64,000 nt of DNA from Pocillopora damicornis. Lineage: Eukaryota. The stretch is taken from the NCBI RefSeq assembly GCF_003704095.1, contig NW_020843402.1, positions 248,001 through 312,000 of the forward strand, given 5' to 3'. A program made the position numbers and the translations under genes. The stretch's first letter is position 1, and each line of letters begins with the position of its first letter. Below, in pieces: positions 1,438 to 35,761 of this stretch. The notes under the pieces are model-generated. The model saw only the letters and a program-made list of their open reading frames with translations, searched no databases and had not been told where the DNA came from.

Positions 1438-2484
1438 TCAACAATTAGTGGTACACTGTTCATTGCTATAGATAGTTGTGAGTGTTTTATTCGCTCGGCT
1501 TTCGCATCTTGCTTTTCCATCCTTGCAAATCAAACGGGGTAATAGTTCTTTGAAGTCTCTTTTTCTAAAAATGTACATAAGGGGATTTAAAAACGAAGTA
1601 ACAAATCGAGAGTAGTAATAAAACACATACAGCACCCATGCTGGTGGATCAAACGTTTGCTGGGCGTTCAGCTCCTGAAAACTCAAAATAAAATATGGCA
1701 GCCAACAGACGGTAAATATGACGAGCATCGCCAGGAAAATGGTGACAGTTTTGCGCTGTGCATAGTTATGCGATTCTTCTTTTCCTTTGGCGGAAAAATG
1801 CTGATCAGAAGGGCTGTGAAATCGCCATATCCGTTTCTCGTGGTACCGAACCGTACTGAAAATGCGAATGTATATATAAGCCATCACCAACAGTGGTATC
1901 ACAAAAAATAGCACAAAAGTAGCGAGGTCATAAGTTTTCTGAAATTTTTCGGCGGTTTCGGCTGCTTCCTCGCTCCGACCTACCCGCCAAGATAGTTGTA
2001 TCAGAGAAACGAACGCAGCCATAAACCACGCCAAGCTTATGAGCGCGAAGAACGCGCGCCGTGTTACGATGTTATGATAGCGCATGGCGTGCGTTATGGC
2101 GATGTAGCGGTCCACAGACACCAGTAGAATATGCACTACGGTAGATACAGAAATGAATCGCCATGTTAGATTTGAGATAGCACAGGTTGTGAAGCTGTGA
2201 GTAGCTGAACAATAAAGTGTAGCAGGAATTCCACACAATCCTGCGAGTAGGTCACTAGCAGCTAGGCTCACAAGAAATGAGTTGGTGACAGACCGGAGTG
2301 TGCGATGGCGAATGAATAAAATTATGACAGTTAAGTTGACGGCGATGATAAATATGGCCAGAACGATTGGAAACGTGTCGAATTCCGCATCGAAAGCTCC
2401 GATTTCTTCGTCTCCATAATTTTCACCGCTACCTGATTCGGAATCATTGGGGGTGTTATTGTTTGATCTGGGTCCTTCTGTCAT
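1438..2484 (-). CDS. Intronless rhodopsin-family (class A) GPCR, amine/adenosine-receptor-like, 348 aa
   Basis: Seven hydrophobic segments with N in TM1, LAASD in TM2, VDRY after TM3, W in TM4, FVIP in TM5, CWLPYF in TM6 and NPLMY in TM7. Confidence 0.93.
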   Translation of the reverse strand: MTEGPRSNNNTPNDSESGSGENYGDEEIGAFDAEFDTFPIVLAIFIIAVNLTVIILFIRHRTLRSVTNSFLVSLAASDLLAGLCGIPATLYCSATHSFTTCAISNLTWRFISVSTVVHILLVSVDRYIAITHAMRYHNIVTRRAFFALISLAWFMAAFVSLIQLSWRVGRSEEAAETAEKFQKTYDLATFVLFFVIPLLVMAYIYIRIFSTVRYHEKRIWRFHSPSDQHFSAKGKEESHNYAQRKTVTIFLAMLVIFTVCWLPYFILSFQELNAQQTFDPPAWVLYVFYYYSRFVTSFLNPLMYIFRKRDFKELLPRLICKDGKARCESRANKTLTTIYSNEQCTTNC

Positions 2485-9870: not shown

Positions 9871-10735
9871 TTCATAGTCCATTTAGCGCGAATGCAGTGC
9901 GCTTCAAAAGGAAATGAAATCGAACTATGGAATAATTATGATATCAACTCAAACGAATCTGAACCAGGCTCAAGGAAGTCAACGTGGTTTTATCAATTGA
10001 ATTGATGATGTAAATTGGCCACCGTAGAGATTTCACAACTAAAGCTGGCGTTTCTAGCGTCAGCCCTTTGTCAGATCGAATTAGACGAATTCACCCTTGT
10101 TTTCTGACCCTTACCAACGCAGTACCACAGTTTCTTTGGAAACCTTCCCCCGTTAGGTCTAGTTACAGTTTTATGGTGTTGTCGTTGTCGTTGTCAAGTG
10201 AAAAGTGTCAAATAGTTTTCGCTTTTGTAAGCATGTTTGCTCTTGGACACCAATGTCACGAACTTTGTTCAAATTCTATCAAAATTTTGTTCTCGCTTGT
10301 CGGTCCTACGTGCCCCTCTGTTTAATATTGGACTGCTTTACCTGTGAATTTTAAGAAAATATTATCTTTACTGCAGTCTTTTAAATCTGCCCTAATGAAA
10401 AGACGATCGGATTATCAGGCTTTCAGTAATTGATTGTTTTTATTTATATATATATATATATGTGATAATTTGTTGTATTTTAGTTTCTTTCGATAAAAAG
10501 CTCTGCTTGTAAATAATTTTTTTTCTGTTAGAAGCGTGGGTTAATCCTCAAAAACCTCCAAGTGTTCGAGGTGGCTGATTAAACTTAGCCGCTGATATTA
10601 ATTATTTGTACCTAATGCAACCGGCATCGTTTCAGTCAGTCTTCTGAACGAAGATTTTACAAGCAGTTGTCTTTATCAACGTTATTCTTCAGGAGCCAGC
10701 GAGACCTAAATCACTTTTAAATTTTTTTCCCTCAG

Positions 10736-13700
10736 AAAACTTCGTCAAGAATTCAAGTACTGGTACCCAGTAGACTTACGTGTGTCTGGGAAAGATCTGG
10801 TGCCAAATCACTTGACATTCTTCCTGTACAATCACTGCGCTGTGTGGCCAAACGAGAAAGACAAGTGAGCATATTCAGAAAGATGAGATTTTCTGTGTTG
10901 TACTGTTTTAGTTAATAAACAATAAGCTCATCTGAAAAAGTTGGTGGACATTTTCTTCGATGAAACAGAATCGCATTCTTCAGTAAGAACTGACCAATTA
11001 TAATCACAGTTTAAGTGCAAATAAGGTCATTGCATAAAAGAAGTCTGAAAAATTCATCAATCAATGAGATCGCGTCTTGGAACTTTTTTTGCTTTTATCT
11101 ATTACTGATTCCCATCAGGACGACAGTACCAAGGCACAACCTTTAAAATTTTGGCAAATTTTGGCTTTAGTCTGAAGCCCATGATATGGTATGATATGAA
11201 AGGAAATGAGTTAAACAAGGCATCAAGCGACGCCAGGTAGGCAGGAATGTTCAAAACTACCCGCTTAGAATTTACTAAATGTTTCTTTTTTTATGTTTAA
11301 TTTTTCAAAGGTGGCCTCGAAGCGTGAGGGCCAATGGACACTTGTTACTCAACTCTGAGAAGGTATTGTGTAAAGGATTGTTTAATTTTCTCTAAATGTT
11401 TGGATTATTTTACAGCATCATGAATGTGTATCATTCAGCTGTGTAAGTTGTCGTCAGTTTTATGTTAAAATAGATGTCGACGGGTGATATCTCATATGTA
11501 TGATTTTGATTTCTAGATGTCGAAATCGACTGGAAACTTTCTTACTCTGAAACAAGCTGTTGAAAAGTTTTCCGCTGATGGTTAGTTTGACCCTCCCCTG
11601 TCTTCCCTCTTTTTATGTCATTTGTCGTCCAGTCTCTTGTCACCTTCTCTCGTCCATCCTTTAAGCCAACTTCCGTTCCCCCGACATTTTTCCCGTTTTA
11701 GGCATGCGCCTGGCCCTGGCTGATGCTGGAGACACAATGGAAGATGCAAACTTTGTAGAGTTGATGGCTGATGCAGGAATCTTACGTCTGTTCACTTTCC
11801 TCGAGTGGACAAAGGTCAGGACAAATAATTCCTCATCGTGGATTGAGTTAAAAAATGTATCAGAGTAGATTCTTTACCAGGCTCTTATGCTCTGTTACGT
11901 TGTTGTGTGTAAACATTGAGGAGGTTCTGAGTAAGCAGTCAGCCATATTTTATAATAAAGAATCAGATAGCAAATTCCATCCCCTCTAAAGACTTAATCC
12001 TTTCAGGACCTTTTAGTGAATTGGCACAACATTGGCTATTTTCAGAAGTAATCTGAAAATAGTCTGAAGTCCAGCACAAGACATCCAGTCGCTTAAATAT
12101 ATCTCCTCGCTATTTCGAGTGTTAAATCCCGACGTACTCTTTAAACACAGGAGATGCTTGCCAGCAAAGATTCTCTGCGCAAGGGGCCTGCAACATGTTA
12201 CGATGATCGAGTGTTTGAAAGGTAACTTTGGTGATAATTCGTGTAAATATCGTTTTTATTGATCCGGCTTGCGACTTTTGACGTGTTTAGAAGCTCTACT
12301 AATGAGAGGCAACTGATTACTTAAATTGTAGCTCCATCAACAAAGCTATAGAAGATTCTGATACAAACTATAAGAACATGATGTACAGAGAGGCACTCAA
12401 AACGGGCTTCTATGAACTGCAGGCAGCAAGGGACCGATACCGGGAGGGCTGTATGATGGGCATGCATAAAGACCTTGTGTTTCGGTTCATCGAGGTAGTG
12501 TGCTGTGCGAAGGTTGTTTTTTAACGTAGTTCCAAGTTGATTGGTGTTGAATGAAACTGTGAGACATAGTTTCTCGTTAGGTGTGTTCTTGTCGTTTTTT
12601 TTTTATCATTGCCGTTCTCTGAAGATCCCCTTGGGGAGATCTGGGTTCCAGTATTTTAAGCCCCAGCAGTTTCTTGAAGATCCTATTTCGGTTATATGCA
12701 TACTGTATCCGTTTCCCACCAAACATTCAACAAGAAATTTTCAAGGTATATGTGATTTTCCTTTTCCCAGGCAAGTTACTCTGAGTGTAGTGATAACATA
12801 AGCAAGGTTACCTCCTGAAAACTGCTTTCAATAGGGACTGCGTCAGAAAAGCTGCACTTTTCTAGGCTTCTCACGGCTGTAACCTGATTTCTTTATCTGT
12901 TTGTGTTGTTAGGTTCAAACCCTGTTGCTGTGTCCCATCTGCCCACATCTTGCCGAGCATCTCTGGGAACTCAACGGCAAGGTGCGCTATGGAAAAAAAT
13001 CAGAGAAAGTACTTCGCTCCATTTATATTTTTGATCCCTGGAAAGTCAAGCTATGATTTCTTCTCCGTGTGAGGGCAGAAGCATATAAGATTATATGCTA
13101 CTGTTGGAAAGTTATAATTCCCTTATAGAGGTTAAAATAGTTAGATCAATTGTAATAGTGCATTTTAGACCTGATTTTTTGTTAAACCAGACGAAAAAGC
13201 GATTCAGGGTCCTTGGGTATAGCCTGGCGTGTGGCCTCGTGTGTACCTTCGTGTTTGGCACTCTTACAAAACGACAGACCTATCAGGCTAAAACAACGCA
13301 CCGATAAACTTGTTTGTTTTCTTACGCGAGGAATTATTTAATAATGTTTGATATATAATATTCGGTGATGATGAACAATTGTGACAAATTTCAAAACTGA
13401 GCACGGTTTCTTATTCTTTTATTGGCAGACCGGTAGTATTATGGATGCATCATGGCCGGCAGTTGGAAAGGTGGATATGCCGTTGCTGAAGTCAGCGGAC
13501 TACTTAGCTGATCGCACTCACGAGTTCCGTTTGAGAATTAAAACCATGATGAACCCAAAGGGAAAAAAGGTGCTATCCTATAATACTTTCTTGTTTATGT
13601 GCATGAACAACACCCCTTTCCTTCGCCGCCTCTTTCCTCCCCCCCCTCCCCCGAGACAAACTGCACAGGGCAGTTTTCATTTGAATTTTAGAAGGAATTG

Positions 13701-16700
13701 GACTTTGCGCTCTCTTATTAGTCTCCAAAATATAAATGGAGGGTAAATAACGTGAAATTTTTCTTTAAGTCCACCTTTCACGTTTAGGTTAAATTATTGG
13801 GCCACTTAAATTTACACGTAGCATATTGTTACAGGCACAGAGTTAGTTCGTTAGTGGAAATAACAGGGTTACGAGAACAATTTTCATCCCATTTTCTTAA
13901 CAAGGAAAATCTATGCTGAAAACGTGCTCAAAGTCGACCCAGCGCAAAGCCGGAAAGGAGTGTCATCTATTAGTGCCTGTCAGGAACATGTNNNNNNNNN
14001 NNNNNNNNNNNNNNNNNNNNNNNNNNNNNNNNNNNNNNNNNNNNNNNNNNNNNNNNNNNNNNNNNNNNNNNNNNNNNNNNNNNNNNNNNNNAGAACTACA
14101 TGTGAAAAATAATCCAATTTATTTCGTCCAACTTGTACTCGCGTGGATCAGTGAATATGTATAAAAACCCAAATTTTTTCCATGTTAACTTGTGTTTCTG
14201 GTGAAGTATAATCCTAACATAGACTGCACAATGAGAGGTGCAAAGATGTTATGCTCGTTACACGTAGACCATATTAGAACTTCCGCATGGTTTTATTTTT
14301 AACAGAAAGATGCAGCTCCACCCAAGAAACCCACTCATGGTATAATCTACGTGGCCAGCTCTTATCCACCTTGGCAGCATGTCACCCTTACCACACTGAA
14401 GGAAATGTACGTCAAGCTGGGGGGGAACTTCCCGGATAACAGGGATATTATGACTCGGATGAAAGAACTACCGGAAGTCAAGAGCGCCATGAAGAAGCTG
14501 ATGCCATTTGTACAACATGTCAAGGTACTAGAAGTAAATCTTGACTTCTGCATTCTACATAGTTCATTACTAACCTCGTCTGCTATCTGAAGCAGTTCAG
14601 GAAAAAATGAAATAAAAATAAACAATTGTTAACTGTTTCATTATATTAAAAAGAACTAGAATCTTACACTGCACATTCTCCTTTTTTTTAATTTGGCACC
14701 TCTCTTTTCTATTAACCCCTATACTTACTCGCAGCTACTCAGAACGATCTCTTAACTTCGTTACTATTTCCATGTCGTTTATCTTCCTTTGAGTTTTCAT
14801 TACAAGATTAATCGCGTGACGTTATTGTGTGACAGGAATGTGTAGAACGTGACGGTCCGTCGGCCTTGGAGACAACTCTACCGTTTGATGAAAGACAAGT
14901 TCTTGAGGAGAACAACGCATTTCTTTCAAAAGCTCTCGAAGTAAGATTTAATTTGATGTGTAAAATATCGTTGCAAAACTTTCCTTGTAGTTAAGTTACA
15001 TTTTTCTTTTTTTGTGTGCTAAATTCAGTCGAATCATGATCATCAACAGTTTTCCCATGGGTACAGGAGGGGAGGGGAGGGGGTGTGTCCTTAACTTTAT
15101 ATTGGAATTTCAAGGCAATCCATGATATTTTATGATAAATCATCAACTTTCTCATCACGGAGAAAGTCCTATGTACCCCAGCGATTCCCCCCTCTCCAGC
15201 CACGCTCTTGATTACCCTTATTTAGTTGAAAGCTTGTAATTAACATGTGGTGAAGCTTTGGAGCTAAGTCTTGAGTTTGATTTTAGCTGGTTAGTGTGGA
15301 AATCAAGCCATCAAGTGAAGCTGACAAAAGAGTTCAGGAGGACTGTGCACCAGGAAAACCATTCTCGGTCTTCACAGCACAGGAGAGTCAGGTTTGTTTT
15401 TTGTGATTTCATGTGACATGCAATTTGGGTGACAAAGAAACAGACTTAGTCCGGACTACGGTAACGTCGTGATGTTAGTGAAAGATAGGAATAACCTCAA
15501 GTCACAAAGTCACTTTTAAAACCTCAACTGAATGAGCTATCAATGTAAAAAATGTGTGAAGGCGCTGTCTCATTGGAGAGAATCTTTCATTAGATACAGC
15601 AATTGCCCAAAATGTTACGAGCTGAGTATTATGTTTTAATTTGGATGATTTCGAAATCTTAAGTTCTTGGCTAATTGTATTTGTTATTTTTGTGATGAAG
15701 GAAAATGAAAGTATAGACTAAGTCAGTGTTCAGCTCCAGTTCATATAGGGAATGTCCGTTACTTCCTTTATCACTGTGAAAGTAGCAGAACTAAAACCGT
15801 TTTACAGATTGTTTCACACAGTTGTCGCTTGATGCAAGAAGAGGTTGGTCTGGCAAGGGTGAAATGAGCTCCAATACATTGATAGAGGTTTTTGGTCAGA
15901 TCGTATATCGCCTCACGCACAACGTAACAGAACACTACAACCCAGAAGAGCCTGAATTCACGACAGAGTCTTTTGGCTACGACCCACTGCTAAGCACAGG
16001 TAGAGAATGGAATTATGAACCTGTTGATGAACTGATATACCAAGAGTACAGCGACAGAGAAGCCACAAACTCGAACTTTTTCGCATATAACAACATTAAT
16101 GTCCAGGTTAGAAACGCTTTCTTACCAGAAGACAGTGAGGAGACAAGGGAACAGAACGGTAAAGATGAAGAAATGGCTCGGAAACGTCTTCGACCATCCT
16201 TTGTACAGACAGTTTGTAAATCGATGTATATTGGAGCTTTGATTTCTTTTCTTTCGGCTGTTTTCATCGCCTTATTTTACCTGTTGATCTCTTTTGTATG
16301 TTACAAAACTATTCTCCACTGTCAAAACTACCCAAAAGAATTGATTCCGATCCGTGTACAATGGATGAAAACTATTTCTGATGCGATTTCGTCTTTTTTC
16401 TATTACTTCTGGTTCTTTGGTATCGCGTTATTCCTTTTCCGTCCATTTCAGTTGAAAGGAGTGAGGAAAACATTGTTCTTGATTTTGTTTGTCTCGTACT
16501 GTTTGGACGCGAGTTATCGCCTTGTATTGGTTAAGGTGGGAGTGTGGTATTATTTGGCACCAAAAGTCTACCAAACTCCACTTTATTCGTTTTTCTTTCT
16601 AAGCGTTTGCTTACAGCTTTATGTTTTGGGAAAACAATTTCGTGCACGACCTATAAAAATGCTTCTTGTTCTGATGTGTAAAATGTTATTGCCATTTTGT

Positions 16701-19700
16701 TTACCTGTTGTTTTCGGTATTTTCCTTTCTGATGTTATTTATGGAATATACATAACAAAACCCATCGAAGGAAAGCTTCTAATTGCTCTCTTTGCCCCTG
16801 TTGTTGCGGTGGTTTTGAAAATTGTGTCACGACTTTGTGTTCAGCGATTAAGGAACATCACTCATCCGGGATACTCTTATGTGTTATTGGTGCCTCTGTA
16901 TTACGGCACAGCGGTTGTCTTGAGAGCTTTGCAAGCAGATCTGGACGATCTTCCATACATCGCCTTACTTGGAGTCATTCACGGTGTTGCTGAGGTTGTG
17001 GAACGTAGTGTTATGGTTGTTGTTGATCACACTTGTACCGTGCTTTGGAAAAGAAAATTGGCCCCCTGGGGAAGTTTCCGTACTCCTCGCCGCGAAAGAC
17101 TTATGGCTGATATCGCCATTATAAGCATGTTGTATGAATCTACTGCTGTAATATCTGTTAACGGATTGTTTTGCTTGTATCAATACGTCTACACAGAAAA
17201 TGACTCTATCATAAACTTGCTCAAGACATTCGCAGTTCACACTTCAGTTCAACTGGTAATTGAGTGGTTTTTTACCAGTGTGTCTCTGGCGATCGAGACT
17301 CGTTATCAGAATATGGCTGTCATGGCTGTTTGGCGAAGGAGATGGAAAAGACACATTTTGGCAGCGCTTGTAAATACAGTACCACTTGCTGTATGGAATA
17401 GTGTCTGTATGTTAATTATTTTGCGCGCGTCTTACTCAAACATAGGGTTTAAACAGCCTTGTAAAATGCCATTTTCTTAAGTGCCGACTAGAAAAAATTT
17501 ACAGAAATTGTTAATGATCGCCTTGTTACACATTTCTTTAGTGGGACCAAAAAGGACTGTCGCTAATTCTTCTCATATAACAAGAGCAACATTGAAGAGA
17601 AGGAAGATATTACACTCACACGAACGAAACTGAAATGAATCAGTAAAGTGAACTTTACTAATTAAGTTTTTTAGTCGCTCAGTCGATAGCTCATTAGGAT
17701 TAAATGATCAAAATGCATGTGTGAGTGTGTAAAGTAGCAGGACCAATAAAGGGAATTCTCTCATGGTTAAAATTCTGGTGGCCATTAACATCGAGAAGAT
17801 TTTTTATGTTATTAGTTGGTGTATTTTCAAAACCAATAAATCAGTAAATCGTCGATTTTTTAAATCTTTTTTAAAACAAAACATAATATACTTCTGAATA
17901 ACAGGGTGACTTTCTATAGAAACTGGTGCTGCGTCGGTGGGAGAGTATATCAGGGTAATTTAGTATTACCAACTGAGTTGATAGCGCAAATTGGTCACAG
18001 TAAAGCTGACGTTTCGAGCGTTAGCCCTTCGTGAGAGTTAATTACGTTATCAATTCAGATGATAATTCTAATTTATCCTATAATATACTTCTGATGGATA
18101 CAGAGATTCACAAAGACGATGGGCTTATCGAGGCGGTTGAGTGCTGAGCGCGCTGTACAGATGCTAATGTGCTGCTAAGAAGCACTCCAGGCAACGCAAT
18201 CTTTTCTTTACTTAGAAGTATCGAAATGACAACAGCTGAATCTTGGGAGCTTCAATTGAAAGGCAAATTCACGCAAGGGAATTTTCAAACTAATGAAACG
18301 GAACTAAACTCTGGACTGTGTGATGTAAAATTATACTTTCTTTTTTTTCTCCACTACACAACCTGTTATTTGAACTTCAAGTTCCTTTGATAGGATGAAA
18401 GAATCTTGGAGAAACCAAACCAAGGATAATTAAAAACGAATCAGCATATTCCTTTTCTGATACATAAATACCGAGGAATCCTTCTCTTTATCATTTTCTT
18501 CAGGTTTTTAATGTTTTTTTCATTGATGAACTTCTGATTTGAGCTAATGAGGTGTTAACGCTAGTCAAGGAAGTGTCTGAAGTATGAAATTTCTCATCCG
18601 CCATGAAATTTCTTATCCGCCATAAAATTTCTTATCCGCCAAGAAATTGACGATACGGAAACAAATTAAGAACGAAAGTTATTTGATGTGCCTTTAATGG
18701 AAACGAAATGGTTTTGATGTTAGTAAGATAGAAATCCTTACTTTCCCATGGTACAATGGTTGTTTGTATGCATTGGGTGCAGTTTCAAGATCTCGCTTGC
18801 AATGGGCTAGAGCATACAAGAAAGGTCTTTAAGTGTCTTTGAAGTACACTATCTGTCTCTCTCTCTGTCTGCCTGCCCAACCGTCTCCATTTCCCTGTTT
18901 GTCTCTTTATCTGTTTTTTCTGTATTGCTGTCTTTGTCTGTATATCTGTTTGTCACTTATGTTGGTTATTCTTCCTCGCAGACAAATGGTGTATGTGGTT
19001 CTAGTGGCGCCGTAGAGTTAACAGATAAATCTCCCATCCCATCTGAGAAACAACCGTCCCCAGTTTGCCGATTTGTTAATGTCAAACTATGTGGAGTTGA
19101 ACCGGCCCAAGGTGCCAAGGGAAATCAAGCCACAGTGCTGCTAGAGAACCCACAAGGACAGTACCTGTTGAACTTGGACCAACTCACACGCGAGGTTACT
19201 AAAAATTTAATACTCGTAAAGCGCCGGTGTTGTTACTTGAGTAGATACCAGTTTGCTTTCGTTGTGTATTTCGCTTTATTCGAGAAGAATAAGCGTGCAT
19301 ATGGTGCTGAGGCTTTGGATTTACGTTTCAGCTTTCTTTTAAGTTTCATGAACGTTGCTCAGTTTTCTTTGTGTGAGCAAATTAGCGGTTCGTTGGAGCA
19401 ACTGTTGATAATATGTTACTGTTGATTTTCTCTTTTTTAGAAACAAGTTTGTCATCGCAGTTATGCATATAAAGCATTTCAGCAGCAAGGTTCGTCTGAA
19501 CGTGAGATGATTGTGTTATTTGATGTTTTTGATTCTTGCGGTTTTAGGTTGCGGCGGTTTTCGGTCTTAGAGGAAGAAAACTTACACTGTCGGCATCGTC
19601 CAGCTGTGATTCACGTGAGTAACTCAAGTTTTTAAACTGAAACGTAAAAGTTTTATCGTAGAGAAGAATGAAAACTTTTAGAGAATTTGTTCTTATCCCT

Positions 19701-20090
19701 CGACAATAGATGAAGTGTGTAGCGCAGTGAAAAAAAATGAAATTTAACAACTCGAAACTCTTCTTACTATTATTTACAGTATTGAGGGTTTCAGAGAAGA
19801 ATTCGAATTGGGAAAGTCGCATGAAGCAGTGAAAATATTAAGTGTTGACTCATAGTGGTACTTGGGTGAAAAAGGTTTTCAGTAAATTGCGGGTTTCGTC
19901 TGATCTTGTCTTACTGGCGATCTGCCATCTTGACCTTACAGGTTCACACTGACACGATATGTCGAAAGTGGTTCATTCAGAGCTCTAATTTTCTCGTATT
20001 TTTCAATGATTTTTGTTGACAGCCCTGACCAGTCAAGACGTCATGAAATACAGTGGACAGTGTCTTTACGCTTTTATTGCGAAGAATTAA
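10736..20090 (+). CDS. LARS1: Cytosolic leucyl-tRNA synthetase, C-terminal half, 14 exons (10736-10864, 11311-11362, 11517-11580, 11702-11814, 12151-12221, 12332-12494, 12913-12981, 13429-13569, 14306-14524, 14836-14940, 15287-15391, 18982-19194, 19548-19614, 20023-20090); 5' exons not found in the window
   Basis: GT-AG exons join in frame: [26 protein letters not shown]...[11 protein letters not shown]|[11 protein letters not shown]...[18 protein letters not shown]...[12 protein letters not shown]...YPPWQH...[12 protein letters not shown]...[12 protein letters not shown]. These are LARS1 hallmark motifs, with KMSKS split by an intron. Confidence is high for exons 1-11; attachment of the last three exons is inferred from phase. 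Confidence 0.88.
13992..14091. other. Assembly gap (100 N) in a LARS intron
   Basis: Run of N. Confidence 0.98.
15864..17480 (+). CDS. Intronless uncharacterised multi-pass membrane protein (~538 aa from ATG 15864), nested in the LARS intron 15392-18981; family copy A
   Basis: Long ORF with an acidic N-terminal ~110 aa, then about 10 hydrophobic segments. Motifs [27 protein letters not shown] and [17 protein letters not shown] are shared with other copies in the window. Confidence 0.85.
   Translation: MSSNTLIEVFGQIVYRLTHNVTEHYNPEEPEFTTESFGYDPLLSTGREWNYEPVDELIYQEYSDREATNSNFFAYNNINVQVRNAFLPEDSEETREQNGKDEEMARKRLRPSFVQTVCKSMYIGALISFLSAVFIALFYLLISFVCYKTILHCQNYPKELIPIRVQWMKTISDAISSFFYYFWFFGIALFLFRPFQLKGVRKTLFLILFVSYCLDASYRLVLVKVGVWYYLAPKVYQTPLYSFFFLSVCLQLYVLGKQFRARPIKMLLVLMCKMLLPFCLPVVFGIFLSDVIYGIYITKPIEGKLLIALFAPVVAVVLKIVSRLCVQRLRNITHPGYSYVLLVPLYYGTAVVLRALQADLDDLPYIALLGVIHGVAEVVERSVMVVVDHTCTVLWKRKLAPWGSFRTPRRERLMADIAIISMLYESTAVISVNGLFCLYQYVYTENDSIINLLKTFAVHTSVQLVIEWFFTSVSLAIETRYQNMAVMAVWRRRWKRHILAALVNTVPLAVWNSVCMLIILRASYSNIGFKQPCKMPFS
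18584..18648 (+). repeat. Tandem 19-bp repeat (ATGAAATTTCTTATCCGCC), about 3.4 copies
   Basis: Seen directly. Confidence 0.75.
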
Positions 20091-21189
20091 CACGATGAAA
20101 ATGCGGCGGCGCATTATGGTGCCAAAATCAAGGTGCTTCTCAGCGAAGTAAAACGAATTTAAAATTCCATAGGAATGAACTTTTAATTTTAGATCACTTT
20201 GAGTATTGCGGCCAAACTCCCTGTAAGTAGTTTCTATGGAGAATATAGGAAAGGAGCTTTCTCTCTCTTACACTTTTTCTGTCGATGTCTTCACACTTCC
20301 CCTCCCCGCTTCAGACAAATTACAATTGAAGTGGGATGGGAGGGGATCTTGGTGAAATTTTGCTGTTTAAATTGGCCTTAATATATTGAAATTCAAACTG
20401 ATTCGAACTCTCTTTAACAATAATTACAAAATGGTTAACGGGGAAATTAATTTACATTTCTGGCACTAGCCCTTTGAGAGGTTTGGGTTGTGCGTGTGGA
20501 GAAATACTTCTGTTGTAATGAATTGTGTGTTGTCGAAAAATACTCCTGTTGTGATGAGTTACAGAACGTCACGTGAGGTGGATATTCAGCTTGCATTTTA
20601 AGGGTAATTAAAAGAAAAGACGAAAATATGGTTGCAGTGCTTGATCTTGTTTTCCCTTCCACCTGTGTTAGGCATTCGGTCAGTGGAGACGAACGAATAG
20701 CTGAGCGAGTGGAGTCGGCCGTCCGTCCCTCTTAGTTTCTCCCGGTTTTTTCAGTTTTTCTTCCGCTCGCCCGCTCTCCAACCCCCCCCCCCCCCCTTTT
20801 TTCATCATCATTCCCCAACACTGACTGTCTGGAACAGGCTTTGTTTTTTGTGGGCTCCCCCCTGTGCAGGCAATGAATACAATTCGACAGCTTCTGTTTT
20901 CGGGTAATAATCTACTTCACTGCGCAGGGGAAATCCCGTACAGTTTTGGTAAGACCATTATCTCTTGGTAATCTGTTCGAATTGTGATTACAACACCGTA
21001 TCGCTTTGGAAGATGTTCATACGAAGATGAAATAGTAAGCAGTACACTTATAGAGGTGTTTGGTCAAGTCTGTTTCATTACGCGTGCAGTGGATCAGGTT
21101 CCTATAACCTTGAAGAACTTCCTCCGATCCGAGTTTGGATGTAGCACCGCCGATATTGCTGTGGAAGATATTGTTCATACAAAGGTAGG

Positions 21190-21622
21190 ATGGCAACCAG
21201 TACCCTGATAGAGGTTTTTGGTCAGATCGTATATCGCCTCACACGCAGCGTAACAGAACACTACAACCCAGAAGAACCTGAATTCACGACAGAGTCTTTT
21301 GGCTACGATCCACTGCTAAGCACAGGTAGAGAATGGTATAAAGAGCCTGTTGATGAACTGATATACCAAGAGTACAGCGACAGAGAGGCCACAAACTCGA
21401 ACTTTTTCGCACATAACATTAATGTCCAGGTTATAAACGCGTTCTTACCAGAAGACAGTGGGGAGACAAGGGTAGATCAGAACGTTAAGGAGGAAGAAAT
21501 GACTTGGAAACGTCTTCGTCCATCCTTTTCACAGACAGTTTGTAAATCGATGTGCTGTGGAGCGTTGATTTCGTTTCTTGCAGCTGTGTTAATTGCCATG
21601 GTTTACCTGCAGATCTCCTATG
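21190..21622 (+). CDS. Membrane-protein family copy B, N-terminal part, cut by an assembly gap
   Basis: [18 protein letters not shown]...AMVYLQISY, nearly identical to copies C and E. Confidence 0.75.
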
Positions 21623-21722
21623 NNNNNNNNNNNNNNNNNNNNNNNNNNNNNNNNNNNNNNNNNNNNNNNNNNNNNNNNNNNNNNNNNNNNNNNNNNNNNN
21701 NNNNNNNNNNNNNNNNNNNNNN
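21623..21722. other. Assembly gap (100 N) between converging inverted gene copies
   Basis: Run of N. Confidence 0.98.
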
Positions 21723-22855
21723 TCAATGACTTCTGCAGCTCCGTGAATAACTCCAAGAATGGCGATAGTCTGGAGATGGTCAAGATCTGCTTGTAAAACT
21801 CGAAAGATAATCGCTGTGCCGAAGTAGAGAGGCGCCAACAACACATAAGAGTATCCTGGATGAGTAATGTTCCATAATCGCTGAACACAGATTCTTGATA
21901 TTACCTTTACAGCGACCCCCAAAAGAGGTGAAAATAATGCAATTATCAGCCTGCCTGTGTTTTCTTGTTTGAGATACGCTCTATAAAGAATATCTGAAAT
22001 AAACATTCCATAAATAAGGGGCAAGCAAAATGGTACTATCATTTTACACAATAAACCTGCCAGTCTTGGACGCGGGCAGAACTGTCTCCCGACAATATAT
22101 AATTGCAAACATATACTGGTGATGAGAAAAGTATATATTGGAATCTGCAATTCAGTGGCTGACGCATAATAAGGCTTTCCAATAACTTGAAGAGAAAAGC
22201 GATAACTTATGTCCAAACAATACGCTGCAAAGCTTACCAGAATCAGCTTTTTCTTTATTCCTTTGAGCTGATACGGACGAAAAAGAAACAGGAGTGTAAC
22301 AAAGATCCAGAAGTAATAGAAACTAACGGATATCGCATCAGAAATCGTTTTGATCCACTGCACACGAATTGGAATTGACGAGATGTTGTAATCCTGACAT
22401 TGAAGAATTGTTTTGTAACTGACATAGGAGATTTGCAGGTAAACCATGGCAATTAACACAGCTGCAAGAAACGAAATCAACGCTCCAAAGCACATCGATT
22501 TAAAAACTGTCTGTGAAAAGGATGGACGAAGACGTTTCCAAGCCATTTCTTCCTCCTTAACGTTCTGATCTACCCTTGTCTCCCCACTGTCTTCTGGTAA
22601 GAACGCGTTTATAACCTGGACATTAATGTTATATGCGAAAAAGTTTGAGTTTGTAGCCTCTCTGTCGCTGTACTCTTGGTATATCAGTTCATCAACAGGC
22701 TCTTTATACCATTCTCTACCTGTGCTTAACAGTGGATCGTAGCCAAAAGACTCTGTCGTGAATTCAGGTTCTTCTGGGTTGAAGTGTTCTGTTACGCTGC
22801 GCGTGAGGCGATATACGATCTGACCAACAACCTCTATCAGTGTACTGGTAGCCAT
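21723..22855 (-). CDS. Membrane-protein family copy C, N-terminal ~377 aa, cut by the gap
   Basis: Open frame MATSTLIEVVGQ...ILGVIHGAAEVI ending at the gap. Confidence 0.8.
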
Positions 22856-23114: not shown

Positions 23115-23558
23115 CGCCGCTTCTTCATCGTGTTAATTCTTCGCAATGAAAGCGTAAAGGCACTGTCGGCTGTATTTCATGACGTCTTGATTGGTAAGAA
23201 CTGTCAACAAAAATCATCAAGAAATACGAGAAAATTGGAGATCTGAATGATCTTTCGACATATCGTGTCAGTGTGAAACTGAAAAGTCAAAATGGCTCAT
23301 CGCCAGTAAAACAAGATTAAACGAAAGCTGCAATTAACTGAAAACATTTTTCACTCAAGTACCACTATGAGTTAACACTCAATATTTTCACTGCTTCATG
23401 CGACTTTCCCAATTTGAATTCTTCTCTGAAACCCTCAATACTGTAAATAATAGTAAGAAGAGTTTCGAGTTGTTAAATTTTATTTTTGCCACCGCGCTAC
23501 ACATTTCATCTATTGTCGAGGGATGAGAACAAATTCTCTAAAAGTTTTCATTCTTCTC
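23115..23558 (-). pseudogene. Inverted duplicate of the LARS last intron and last exon (copy of ~19660-20110)
   Basis: Reverse complement of 19660-20110, including caagacgtcatgaaatacag...gaagaattaa, with indels. Confidence 0.75.
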
Positions 23559-25119: not shown

Positions 25120-26525
25120 GATATTTTACACATCAAATTAAATCTTCGAGAACTTTTGAAAGAAATGCGTTGTTCTCCTCAAGAACTTGTCTTTCATCAC
25201 ACGGTAGAGTTATCTCCAAGGTTGACGGACCGTCACGTTCTACACATTCTTGTCACACAATAATGTCCGTGATTAATCTTGTAATGAAAACTCAAAGGAA
25301 GATAAACGACGTGGAAATAATTACGAAGTTAAGAGATCGTTCTGAATAGCTGCGAGTTAGTATAGGGGTTAATAGAAAAGAGAGGCGCTATATTAAAAAA
25401 AAAAAAGAAAGAAAAAGGAAAAGGCGCAGTGAAAGATTCGATTACTTTTTACCTTCAATATAATGAAACAGTTATAACAATTGTCTGTTTTTCTGAATGA
25501 AATGCGAAATTTAAATGCTGCAGATAGCAGACAAGGCTACTAATAAAGCAGACGAGTTGTACAAATGGCATCAGCCTCTTCATGGCGCTCTTGACTTCCG
25601 GTTGTTCTTTCATCCGAGTCATAATATCCCTGTTATCCAGGAAGTTCCTCCCCAAGCTTAACGTACATTTTCTTCAGTGTGGTAAGGATATCATGTGGCT
25701 AAGGTGGATAAGAGCTGGCCGCGAAGATTATACCATGAGTGGGTTTCTTGGGGTGAGCTGTATCTTTCTGTTAAAAATAAGACCATGCGCAAGTTCTAAT
25801 ATGGTCTACGTGTAACGAGCATAACATCTTCACACCTCTCATTGTGCAATCTATGTTAGGATTATACTTCACCAGAAACACAAGTCAACATGGAAAAATT
25901 GGGGGTTTTCATAAATCTTCACTGATCCACGCGAGTACAAGTTTGGACGAAATAAATAAGATTATTTTTCACACGGAGCTCTAAAAATACCTGATCAACA
26001 TTTTAGATTTACTATTTACAGTCTTCTCTGACGGAAAAGCTTACACGTTGTAAGAAGGGTTTTGTTTACGAAAATTGGGAATAAGTTCACCATCAGCTGT
26101 AGGTGGTACATTTCAGTTTTGCTTCAGCTTTTTTGTTTCAAAATCTTTGTCTAATATGCGATTCAAAGAGTATATGAGGAGATCGATTTGGCTGACTAGT
26201 TTTTTAAGCCCTAGCCGTTTTTAGATGTAAACTATGTTGGTCTATCGAGTTATTGGGATTGAAAGTTACCGTTCCACTCTATAAGAAGGTACATGTTCCT
26301 GACAGGCGCTGATAGATGACACTCCTTTCCGGCTTTGCGGTGGGTCGATGTTGAGCACGTTTTTAACATTAATTTTCCTTGTTAAGAAAATGGGATGAAA
26401 ATTGTTCTCGTAACCCCGTTACTTTCACTAACGAACTAACTCTGTGCCTGTAACAATATGCTACGTGTAAATTTCAGTGGCCCAATATTTAACCTAAACG
26501 TGAAAGGTGGACTTGAAGAAAAATT
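25120..26525 (-). pseudogene. Inverted pseudogenic duplicate of LARS 13755-14970 (exons 14306-14524 and 14836-14940)
   Basis: Reverse-complement match. The exon copy carries TGG>TAG (SYPP*) and indels, and its donor site is altered. Confidence 0.85.
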
Positions 26526-28309: not shown

Positions 28310-28778
28310 TCAAGTAAACGGCATCTTGCAGGGCTGGTTAAGGACTACCTCATAACGAGCGCGAAATAACTTTAAAAGACAAAAACTATTCCATACAGCG
28401 ATTGGAAATGTATTTACAAGCGCTAATAACATGTGTCTTTTCCATCTTCGTCGCCAAACAGCTATCACAGCCACATTCTGATAACGAGTCTCAATCGCAA
28501 GAGACACACTGGTGAAAAACCACTCGATTGCTAACTGAACTGACGTGTGACCTGCAAAGGTCTTGAGCAACCAAATGATAGAGTTGTTTTCCACGAATAC
28601 AAAATCATGCAAGTATCTTAGTCCGTTTACATACACCACAGCAACAGATTCAGACAACATACTCAGGATGATGATATCAGCCATGAGTCGTTCGCGACGA
28701 GGTGTGCGGAAACTCCCCCAAGGAGCCAATTTCCTTTTCCACAACACATGGAGAACATGATCAACCAACGCCATGATG
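28310..28778 (-). CDS. Membrane-protein family copy D, C-terminal ~155 aa (5' part lost in the gap)
   Basis: [31 protein letters not shown]...QPCKMPFT*. Confidence 0.8.
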
Positions 28779-28878
28779 NNNNNNNNNNNNNNNNNNNNNN
28801 NNNNNNNNNNNNNNNNNNNNNNNNNNNNNNNNNNNNNNNNNNNNNNNNNNNNNNNNNNNNNNNNNNNNNNNNNNNNNN
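28779..28878. other. Assembly gap (100 N)
   Basis: Run of N. Confidence 0.98.
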
Positions 28879-30450
28879 TTCCTTATAACGAGCACGAAAT
28901 AACACTAAGAGACAAAAGCTATTCCATACAGCGATTGGAAATGTATTTACAAGCGCTAACAACATGTGTCTTTTCCATCTTCTTCGCCAAACAGCCATCA
29001 CAGCCACATTCTGATAACGAGTCTCAATCGCCAGAGACACACTGGTGAAAAACCACTCAATTACCAGTTGAACTGAAGTGTGAACTGCGAAGGTCTTGAG
29101 CAACCAAATTATAGAGTTGTTTCCAACGAATACAAAATCATGCAAGTATCTTAGTCCGTTTACATACACCACAGCAACAGATTCAGACAACATACTCAAG
29201 ATGATGATATCAGCCATGAGTCGTTCGCGACGAGGTGTGCGAAAACTCCCCCAAGGAGCCAATTTCCTTTTCCACAACACATGGAGAACATGATCGACCA
29301 ACGCCATGATGCTTCGTTCAATGACTTCTGCAACTCCGTGAATAACTCCAAGAATGGCGATAGTCCGGAGATGGTCAAGATCTGCTTGTAAAGCTCGAAA
29401 GATAATAGCTGAGCAGTAGTAGAGAGGCGCCAATAACACATAAGAGTATCCTGGATGAGTAATGTTCCATAATCGTTGAACACAGATTCTTGATATTACC
29501 TTTATAGCGACCCCCAAGAGAGGTGAAAATAATGCAATTATCAGTCTGCCTGTGTCTTTTTGTTTGAGATACGTTCTATAAAGAATATCCGAAGTAAACA
29601 TTCCAGAAATAAGGGGCAAGCAAAATGGCACTATCATTTTACACAATAAACCTGTAAGCCTTGGACGCCGGCAAAACTGTCTCCCGACAATATATAATTG
29701 CAAACATATACTGGTGATGAGAAAAGTATATATTGGAATCTGCAATTCAGTGGCTGACGCATAATAAGGCTTTCCAATAACTTGAAGAGAAAAGCGATAA
29801 CTTATGTCCAAACAATACGCTACAAAGCTTACCAGAATCAGCTTTTTCTTTATTCCTTTTAGCTGATACGGACGAAAAAGAAACAGGAGTGTAACAAAGA
29901 TCCAGAAGTAATAGAAACTAACGGATATCGCATCAGAAATCGTTTTGATCCACTGCACACGAATTGGAATTGACGAGATGTTATAATCCTGACATTGAAG
30001 AATTGTTTTATAACTGACATAGGAGATTTGCAGGTAAACCATGGCAATTAACATAGCTGCAAGAAACGAAATCAACGCTCCAAAGCACATCGATTTACAA
30101 ACTGTCTGTGAAAAGGATGGACGAAGACGTTTCCAAGCCATTTCTTCCTCCTTAACGTTCTGATCTACCCTTGTCTCCACACTGTCTTCTGGTAAGAACG
30201 CGTCTTTAACCTGGACATTAATGTTATGTGCGAAAAAGTTCGAGTTTGTAGCCTCTCTGTCGCTGTACTCTTGGTATATCAGTTCATCAACAGGCTCTTT
30301 ATACCATTCTCTACCTGTGCTTAGCAGTGGATCGTAGCCAAAAGACTCTGTCGTGAATTCAGGTTCTTCTGGGTTGTAGTGTTCTGTAACGCTGCGCGTG
30401 AGGCGATACACGATCTGACCAAAAACCTCTATCAGTGTACTGGTAGCCAT
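28879..30450 (-). CDS. Membrane-protein family copy E, nearly complete (last ~12 codons in the gap)
   Basis: Open frame of 524 codons, [12 protein letters not shown]...LFRARYKE. Confidence 0.88.
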
Positions 30451-30938
30451 CCTTCCTTTGAGTGACTAATGTCTTCCACAGCAATATCACCGATCATACA
30501 TCCACACTCGGATCGGAGGAGGTCCTTCCGGGTCGTAGAAAGCTGATACGCTGCACGTGTAATGAAACAGTCTTGACCAAACACCTCTAAAAGTGTACTG
30601 CTTACTATTTCACCTTCATATGAACAACATCTTCCAAAGTGATACGGTGTTGTAATCACAATTCGAACAGATTACCGAGAGATAATTGTCTTACCAAAAC
30701 TGTACGGCCGCCGCATCTTCATCGTGTTAATTCTCCGCGATGAAAGCGTAAAGGTACTGTACGCTGTATTTCATGACGTCTTGACTGGTCATTAAAAATC
30801 ATTAAGAAATACGAGAAATTAGAGCTCTGAATTAACCACATTCCACATATCGTGTCTGTGTGAAACTGAAAAGTCAAGATGGCAGATCGCCAGTAAAACA
30901 AGATGAAACGGAAGCCGTAATTTACTGAAAACATTTTT

Positions 30939-34768: not shown

Positions 34769-35761
34769 TTAAACGAGAAAATCGATTGTTCCACGAGCCC
34801 GTTTGTTTTTCTTTGAGGTAAGACAACACCTTAAACATTCGTAGAGGGCAGATCGGAAATCGCGCTTTCCCAGAACCAAAATGACTGGGTTGATCGCGGA
34901 GGCAGTGAATCTTGTGTAGTAAAACATGAAATACACTGCCCAAAAAGGTAATGACTCCAGAGTTTCACCGTCCTCCATAAGTTCCAGGATGAAGTATGGC
35001 GCCCAACAAATGAGGAACACGGCTAACATGCTTGCAAACACCACAGCGACTTTCCACTTCAATGCAACATTAGGGAACGTTTGGTTTTGGTTGTCGTCAA
35101 GAGAGCGGACCTTCCGTAGCTGTGCCTGTTTCTCCACTCTGTACAAGCGAACAAGAGCAAAAATACGTGTGTAGCAATAAACCATCGTAACCAACGGTAC
35201 AGCGAGGAAGAGGATCATCACAACGATGGAGTAAATTCGGTGAACTCGAAGCTTGTGCTCATAATAATTGTCGTCCGGATAGATGATCCAAGACAGCTGA
35301 ATAAGAGACACAAAGGCAGCACAGACCCAACAGGCGCATACCAGACAGACAGAAACTCTTTGCCTTGAGAGGGAATCATATCTTAAAGCGCGAACCACTG
35401 TGGCAAACAGATGCAACGTCAAAATAGTCAAATGCAGAACTGTAGAGACAGATACAAACCTCCAGAAGGCAGCGCTAGAGAGGCACCACGACGGAGTGTG
35501 AGTGACATTACAGGCCAGGTACAAAGGTATCCCTACCGCACCAGCCAAAAAATCACTCACTGCTAAGCTTGCTGATATACCATTGCTCACAGTTTGGAGT
35601 TTCTTTCTACGAAGAATCAGGATCAGAGCGGTGGCATTGGCGATGACTATCAATACTGCAACAATGACAGGATAGATATCAAAGTGGACAGAAAATCCGT
35701 TCATCAATTCTTCTTCCATCGTCTCGTTGCCATCATCTTTGAACTCCAAATCGCTCGCCAT
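34769..35761 (-). CDS. Intronless class A GPCR, 330 aa, paralogue of 1438-2484 with degenerate activation motifs
   Basis: Seven TM segments with LAVSD and CWAPYF. Shares FDxxP, GIP, WRFxSVSTV, FVSLIQLSW and YYxRF with the first GPCR. HLF replaces DRY and NPVIL replaces NPxxY. Confidence 0.9.
   Translation of the reverse strand: MASDLEFKDDGNETMEEELMNGFSVHFDIYPVIVAVLIVIANATALILILRRKKLQTVSNGISASLAVSDFLAGAVGIPLYLACNVTHTPSWCLSSAAFWRFVSVSTVLHLTILTLHLFATVVRALRYDSLSRQRVSVCLVCACWVCAAFVSLIQLSWIIYPDDNYYEHKLRVHRIYSIVVMILFLAVPLVTMVYCYTRIFALVRLYRVEKQAQLRKVRSLDDNQNQTFPNVALKWKVAVVFASMLAVFLICWAPYFILELMEDGETLESLPFWAVYFMFYYTRFTASAINPVILVLGKRDFRSALYECLRCCLTSKKNKRARGTIDFLV

Follow-up and report, generated by a model that had tools for sequence, protein, structure and literature searches.

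A Ubiquitin-Like Domain of the IARS1 UNE-I Family at the C-Terminus of Leucyl-tRNA Synthetase in Stony Corals and Sea Anemones

Introduction

The domains UNE-I and UNE-L received their names as features peculiar to isoleucyl-tRNA synthetase (IleRS, encoded by IARS1) and leucyl-tRNA synthetase (LeuRS, encoded by LARS1), respectively, and are regarded as the contacts on which the EPRS-IARS1-LARS1 arm of the animal multi-synthetase complex is built. The subject of this report is the 3' end of the cytosolic LeuRS gene (LARS) of the stony coral Pocillopora damicornis, which lies in a stretch of 64,000 nucleotides (RefSeq assembly GCF_003704095.1, contig NW_020843402.1, positions 248,001 to 312,000 of the forward strand), referred to below as the window, and which encodes a C-terminal tail of the UNE-I family.

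The vertebrate UNE-I is an array composed of a KH domain and two ubiquitin-like UBX repeats, UBX1 and UBX2, which bind a hairpin of EARS1 in chicken and human (PDB 7WRS; PMC9643514). UNE-L is a ubiquitin-like domain of ~90–115 residues that directly follows the PGKP motif of cytosolic LeuRS (PDB 9W01; PMC13439101, PMC7229842). It anchors LARS1 on the catalytic body of IARS1, where its partner is the catalytic/CP3 surface, and phosphorylation releases this contact (PMC7229842, PMC13439101), which has been linked to the release of LARS1 for mTORC1 signalling (PMC13439101). The IARS1 catalytic/CP3 surface is reported to be poorly conserved in the invertebrate IARS1 proteins compared in the 2026 paper (PMC13439101), and the same paper states that invertebrates are without the UNE-L domain. 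Interaction modules have been transferred between members of the complex in a lineage-specific manner before, as seen in the shared WHEP, GST-like, and EMAPII appendages and in nematode MetRS, which carries a p43-like domain in cis (PMC4394549). The coral LeuRS tail resembles these cases, with the difference that UNE-I was named for one synthetase and is found here on a second. A literature search found no paper on UNE-L together with cnidaria and none describing an architecture of LeuRS with UBX. The gene model is already in RefSeq and its domain matches are precomputed publicly; the novelty lies in the comparative interpretation and not in the sequence.

The 3' End of the Coral LARS Gene

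The whole LARS gene spans G000:C37:236679-268087, begins ~11.3 kb upstream of the window, and is single-copy in the 234-Mb assembly. Its exons in the window were located by protein matches, and its splicing was followed in Logan RNA contigs from runs X1, X5, X6, and X11, which represent four studies and were mapped to 14250-20200. Exons from the window were searched singly, while the spliced product was represented by public proteins. The features are as follows.

10731-13569 (+), LARS core exons, 92–100% identity in tblastn of P0241/P0106 against the window
10731-10865, 11306-11392, 11517-11582, 11683-11814 (+), LARS core blocks, approximate, from protein matches
12145-12219, 12330-12497, 12913-12984, 13426-13569 (+), further LARS core blocks, likewise approximate
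14304-14524 (+), LARS exon, part of the RagD-binding/C-terminal domain region, from tblastn, with RNA joint 14522>14834
14836-14940 (+), LARS exon, from tblastn, with RNA joints on both sides
15287-15391 (+), last LARS core exon, with a phase-0 GT donor, ending near the point where medusozoan LARS stops
15392-18981 (+), intron of 3,590 nucleotides, defined by RNA joint 15391>18982
18982-19194 (+), tail exon A, a linker of ~25 residues and the first half of a UBX/beta-grasp domain (strands 1–2 and the start of the helix)
19548-19614 (+), tail exon B, 67 nucleotides, with a phase-1 donor and RNA joints
20023-20090 (+), tail exon C, encoding the final strand (...CLYAFIAKN), with RNA joint 19614>20023 and a match to P0241

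Five GT..AG joints, 14522>14834 (cut shifted by +2), 14940>15287, 15391>18982, 19194>19548, and 19614>20023, are identical in all four runs, the last four of them with one contig per run. The joint between core and tail is reported as 15388>18979, a consequence of a three-nucleotide ambiguity, and record 19 of X6 joins three LARS core exons to 30 nucleotides beyond 15391. The reading frame is continuous across the three tail exons: exon A comprises 71 codons and is in phase 0 at both ends, exon B comprises 22 codons and one base, and exon C completes the split codon and ends with a TAA stop at 20088-20090. The RefSeq LARS protein of P. damicornis (P0241, 1205 amino acids) maps exon by exon onto the window, and its C-terminus is exactly the predicted spliced tail. 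Pfam matches, the mapping of P0241, and X6 record 19 place the class I catalytic core, the anticodon-binding domain, and RBD_LARS1 upstream, spliced to this tail. An earlier note, made from the DNA letters alone, had proposed that the three exons splice in frame onto LARS and had pointed to RNA across 15391>18982 as the place to look; its translations of the three exons are borne out by the sequence, and RNA contigs span this junction in all four runs. Gene model and splicing can be taken as shown: the cytosolic LeuRS gene truly ends with these three exons.

Identity of the Tail Domain

Two Pfam families are relevant to the identity of the tail. PF23567 (Ubiquitin_IARS1, "Isoleucine--tRNA ligase, cytoplasmic, ubiquitin-like") corresponds to the UBX domain of UNE-I and has a curated cut-off of 22 bits, and PF22947 (ULD_3, "Leucine--tRNA ligase, ubiquitin-like domain") corresponds to UNE-L. 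Exon A alone matches PF23567 with 53.5 bits (E 2.6e-14), and the full tails reach 74.7 bits (E 6.6e-21) for the coral LARS P0106 and 69.6 bits for the LARS fragment P0033 of the anemone Exaiptasia, placing them in the UNE-I UBX sequence family at E values of 1e-14 to 1e-21. Exon A also aligns with both UBX repeats of IARS1 in the chicken (7WRS) and human (9W01) entries of the PDB. In phmmer searches, the alignment of P0033 with human LARS1 stops at residue 1063, just past PGKP, and its tail then matches IARS1 UBX2 at 1169-1229. A Pfam scan of P0106 gave no match to ULD_3 at E ≤ 0.1.

Profile comparisons separate the two families. The LARS-tail profile is related to the IARS-UBX profile with an hhalign probability of 99.95% (E 2.8e-38), whereas the LARS tails give 0.85% (E 0.065) and the IARS UBX domains 0.5% (E 0.12) against ULD_3, indicating no relation. 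PF22947 was matched nowhere in the genome, a weak negative, as the search was made exon by exon and its controls were also unmatched. Thus, the earlier note was right to assign the tail to the IARS1 UNE-I type and not to UNE-L. The coral tail and UNE-L have in common their ubiquitin-like character, their size, and their position directly after PGKP, but no detectable sequence relation (hhalign below 1%, no Pfam match).

Structural models agree with this assignment. In the AlphaFold model of the coral LARS P0107, a tail with the order beta-beta-alpha-beta-alpha-beta occupies residues 382-463 (pLDDT, the predicted local distance difference test, 71–86) and is preceded by a disordered linker at 349-379. 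The predicted elements (strands 382-388 and 401-407, helix 417-427, strand 436-438, helix 449-453, strand 459-463) follow the same order as those of the coral IARS UBX model and fit a ubiquitin-like beta-grasp fold. The model used for the fold search was that of the coral IARS UBX (P0088, Orbicella), not the LARS tail by itself; the best PDB match of this model is chicken UNE-I, 7wrs_B (Foldseek E 4.7e-5; VIA Z 11.6, root-mean-square deviation 2.0, 87 residues aligned), compared with Z ≤ 9.7 for generic ubiquitin folds. A protein-atlas search with the LARS tail returned no usable match. The tail is a disordered linker of ~30 residues and one ubiquitin-like (UBX/beta-grasp) domain of the IARS1 UNE-I family. 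It shares with the described UNE-I UBX domains (PF23567; 7WRS; PMC9643514) the order of its beta-grasp elements and a place at the C-terminus of a class Ia synthetase, and differs in being carried by LeuRS instead of IleRS. It also differs from the vertebrate array, in which a KH-like domain and two tandem UBX repeats provide the EARS1-binding groove: coral LARS and coral IARS1 each have a single UBX.

Relation to the Coral IARS1 Gene

PF23567 is matched at two places only in this genome, tail exon A and C2202:241372-241503. The latter lies at the 3' end of the coral's own IARS1, whose single match represents one UBX domain split over three exons.

L002 1429-1626, IARS1 tail exon 1, phase-0 end after ...DQLKRQ
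L002 1985-2051, IARS1 tail exon 2, 67 nucleotides, phase-1 end
L002 2380-2444, IARS1 tail exon 3, ending at the stop codon

The LARS tail has the same organization. Its first junction is in phase 0 after ...DQLTRE, so that the two genes share a phase-0 junction after ...DQL(T/K)R(E/Q), a middle exon of 67 nucleotides, and a second junction in phase 1. The shared phases and the middle exon of equal length point to a duplication of exons at the DNA level, as the earlier note had supposed when it proposed exon shuffling from IARS1. Within this genome, the two tails are 48–54% identical in protein sequence over the first exon, and the Pocillopora LARS tail shares 58% identity with the IARS UBX of Orbicella, 55% with anemone LARS tails, and 36–48% with the majority of other IARS UBX domains, although two short partial alignments reach 50%. 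The coral's own IARS1 tail is therefore a diverged relative and not a near-identical recent copy, and because the LARS and IARS1 copies are only about 50–58% identical, the duplication is old. A maximum-likelihood tree of UBX domains unites seven LARS tails in a single clade (support 85/75, present in 81% of bootstrap trees).

Distribution among Animals

LARS domains and PF23567 occur in one protein in the stony corals Pocillopora damicornis (P0241), Montipora foliosa (P0238), and Oculina patagonica (P0235) and in the sea anemones Nematostella vectensis (P0239), Exaiptasia diaphana (P0033), and Actinia tenebrosa (P0105); the same architecture was found in two further corals. A search of representative proteins with exon A recovered LARS fragments that carry this fusion (P0011, P0018, P0033), and three multi-repeat matches from that search (P0006, P0077, P0099) were discarded as unrelated repetitive proteins. 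A LeuRS with an IARS-type UBX is therefore common to stony corals and sea anemones and not peculiar to one genome, and its presence in both orders places its origin before they split. An event that is recent or confined to Pocillopora is at odds with the single clade formed by the seven hexacoral tails and with their ~50–58% identity to coral IARS1 UBX. In the sequence L005 (1130-1534; ENA ERZ25073755:ctg64179), a single uninterrupted open reading frame (ORF) covers both the PGKP exon and the first UBX exon, and the 3.6-kb intron of Pocillopora is without counterpart.

Other animals have LARS proteins of two further kinds. Medusozoan LARS (Hydra, Hydractinia, Rhopilema) ends 5–7 residues past PGKP and is tail-less, and an amoebozoan LARS ends in much the same way. 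ULD_3 is found on the LARS of vertebrates, two hemichordates, Priapulus, insects, nematodes (a Caenorhabditis species among them), molluscs, and a rotifer; human, slug, cockroach, whipworm, and rotifer LARS match it with E values of 1e-25 to 1e-44, and the invertebrate proteins that carry it include P0115, P0120, P0158, P0187, P0191, P0240, P0253, and P0331. In the present comparison, ULD_3 is limited to bilaterians: none of the cnidarian LARS proteins examined has it. The comparison of cnidarian C-termini that the earlier note had suggested thus bears out a UBX tail shared by hexacorals, but medusozoans have neither this tail nor UNE-L. A further LARS model, P0226 of Sanderia malayensis (EukProt), has a ubiquitin-like end of a different family (PF13881) whose terminus is rich in cysteine and CAAX-like; this model probably fuses LARS with an adjacent gene resembling UBL3 and was left out of the tail types.

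A Possible Role in Complex Assembly

By analogy with the vertebrate domains, the coral LARS tail would be a protein-docking module for the multi-synthetase complex. A flexibly tethered UBX would dock LeuRS in the complex through a contact of UBX type, which would differ from the vertebrate contact of UNE-L with the catalytic body of IARS1. Its likely partner would be glutamyl-prolyl synthetase, which the UBX domains of IARS1 bind in vertebrates. A more speculative arrangement, to which we would give little credence, is that hexacoral IARS1 and LARS1, with one UBX each, pair in trans and rebuild a two-UBX groove for the EPRS hairpin, so that LeuRS enters the complex via EPRS/IARS1. If this were true, the topology would be unlike that of the vertebrate UNE-L-to-IARS1 contact, and the ubiquitin-like LeuRS tail would represent convergent recruitment in two animal lineages.

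Probable Gain of the Tail and Alternative Histories

The observations as a whole are best explained, in our judgment with moderate confidence, by a true LARS 3' end that arose through an old gain of an IARS1 cassette by a tail-less LARS and that acts as a docking tail. Under this scheme, the three terminal IARS1 exons, including the UBX, the stop codon, and the 3' end, would have been duplicated downstream of LARS. The recipient LARS would have ended just past PGKP, as jellyfish and hydroid LARS still do, and a new phase-0 donor would have linked its old last exon to the duplicated cassette, the acquisition predating the divergence of stony corals from sea anemones. While the domain family, its distribution, and the common exon structure are shown by the observations above, the direction and mode of duplication, gain instead of replacement, and docking are inferred. 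There would have been two independent gains, of UBX in the hexacoral or anthozoan stem and of ULD_3 in the bilaterian stem.

The earlier note had instead described a domain swap, with a UNE-I type domain in place of UNE-L. Under such a history, the LARS of the common ancestor of cnidarians and bilaterians would have had ULD_3, the UBX cassette would have replaced it in the hexacoral stem, and Medusozoa would have lost their tail. ULD_3 is widespread in Bilateria and on this account old, and the hexacoral tail stands at exactly the same position, directly after PGKP. However, no cnidarian LARS with ULD_3 was seen, and the genome gave no PF22947 match, with the weakness of that negative noted above. 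A swap needs a gain, a loss, and a replacement, compared with two gains; since Medusozoa are tail-less and cnidarian ULD_3 was not seen, a gain is the simpler account, and we consider the swap unlikely.

Common descent of the two tails is rather improbable. It would require that an IARS-type UBX joined LARS before cnidarians and bilaterians separated, that hexacorals retained an IARS-like sequence, that the bilaterian copy diverged into ULD_3/UNE-L, and that Medusozoa lost the tail. The shared position in LARS is in keeping with this, as is the description of both families as ubiquitin-like in Pfam. Divergence to that extent is difficult to reconcile with the hhalign values for ULD_3 against LARS tails and IARS UBX domains (0.85% and 0.5%) when coral LARS and IARS UBX are still 58% identical, and a loss in Medusozoa is required as well. 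That the tail is an artefact (a stray IARS1 3' pseudo-copy, an assembly chimera, or part of another gene, with LARS really stopping near 15391) is scarcely credible, because, for all that the locus is rearranged (inverted partial copies of LARS 3' exons and of exon C, N gaps, a gene inside the intron) and that RNA contigs continue from exon into intron, the spliced joints recur in four independent studies, the architecture occurs in six named species, L005 contains the fusion in one ORF, and the tail is only ~50% identical to the genome's IARS1 tail.

Several points weigh against the gain of a docking tail by LARS as set out here. At the joints 15391>18982 and 19194>19548, the shorter side of the RNA contigs extends for only 22–30 nucleotides, which reflects a unitig limit. 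In every run, RNA contigs pass from 15362, in the last core exon, to ~17947, in the intron, which implies that some transcripts pass the donor unspliced, and a tail-less LARS isoform may coexist with the tailed one. In the UBX tree, 15 of 27 inner branches are drawn open, and no particular IARS UBX domain is placed as sister to the LARS tails. The choice between gain and replacement draws on Medusozoa, the one animal lineage covered outside hexacorals and bilaterians. With respect to function, vertebrate IARS1 grips EARS1 with two UBX domains together, and a single UBX may bind differently; the predicted pair of the Pocillopora LARS tail (P0241 1105-1205) and the Orbicella IARS UBX (P0088 15-106) scored 0.01 against a mark of 0.34, a result that speaks neither for nor against such a pairing.

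The Intron and Its Surroundings

The LARS locus has further genes and partial copies within and beside it, as listed below.

15822-17480 (+), intronless ORF for a multi-pass membrane protein of 552 amino acids, inside the LARS intron between core and tail and on the same strand
~17927-18034, intron segment with RNA word depth of up to ~10,000 and many different loose ends on both sides
21190-21729 (+, running into N), 21485-22855 (-), 28663-30450 (-), and 28310-28774 (-), paralogs of the membrane ORF
23136-23204 (-), inverted tail exon C copy with 83% protein identity to P0241
25145-25770 (-), decayed inverted copy of LARS exons 14304-14940, 51–86% protein identity, with broken frame
30730-30792 (-), further copy of tail exon C
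1441-2484 (-) and 34772-35761 (-), intronless ORFs for rhodopsin-family G protein-coupled receptors (Pfam 7tm_1, E 9e-43 and 1.3e-25), the first inside a LARS intron of ~11 kb, on the opposite strand

The 552-residue membrane ORF has no Pfam match. Read-through of LARS transcripts may allow its expression, given that the RNA contigs from 15362 to ~17947 are unbroken in four of four runs. The pattern at ~17927-18034 is that of a short repeat which many transcripts have in common, and an Rfam scan of it gave no match. The block at 25145-25770 consists of pseudo-exons and is not a second gene. The inverted copies of the LARS 3' exons and of exon C, decayed and with broken frames, adjoin paralogs of the membrane ORF, which suggests a joint duplication of the LARS 3' end and its nested membrane gene. 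Next to the exon C copies, none of exon A or B was found.

Significance for LeuRS Biology

The LeuRS proteins compared here exist in three natural states: without a tail in jellyfish and hydroids, with ULD_3 in bilaterians, and with an IARS-type UBX in corals and anemones. This distribution suggests that a ubiquitin-like tail has been recruited to the same spot on LeuRS more than once. The presence of ULD_3 in insects, nematodes, molluscs, a rotifer, a priapulid, and hemichordates qualifies the published statement on invertebrates and UNE-L (PMC13439101). Hexacoral LeuRS, with its IARS-type tail, offers a natural experiment on the tethering and release of this enzyme.

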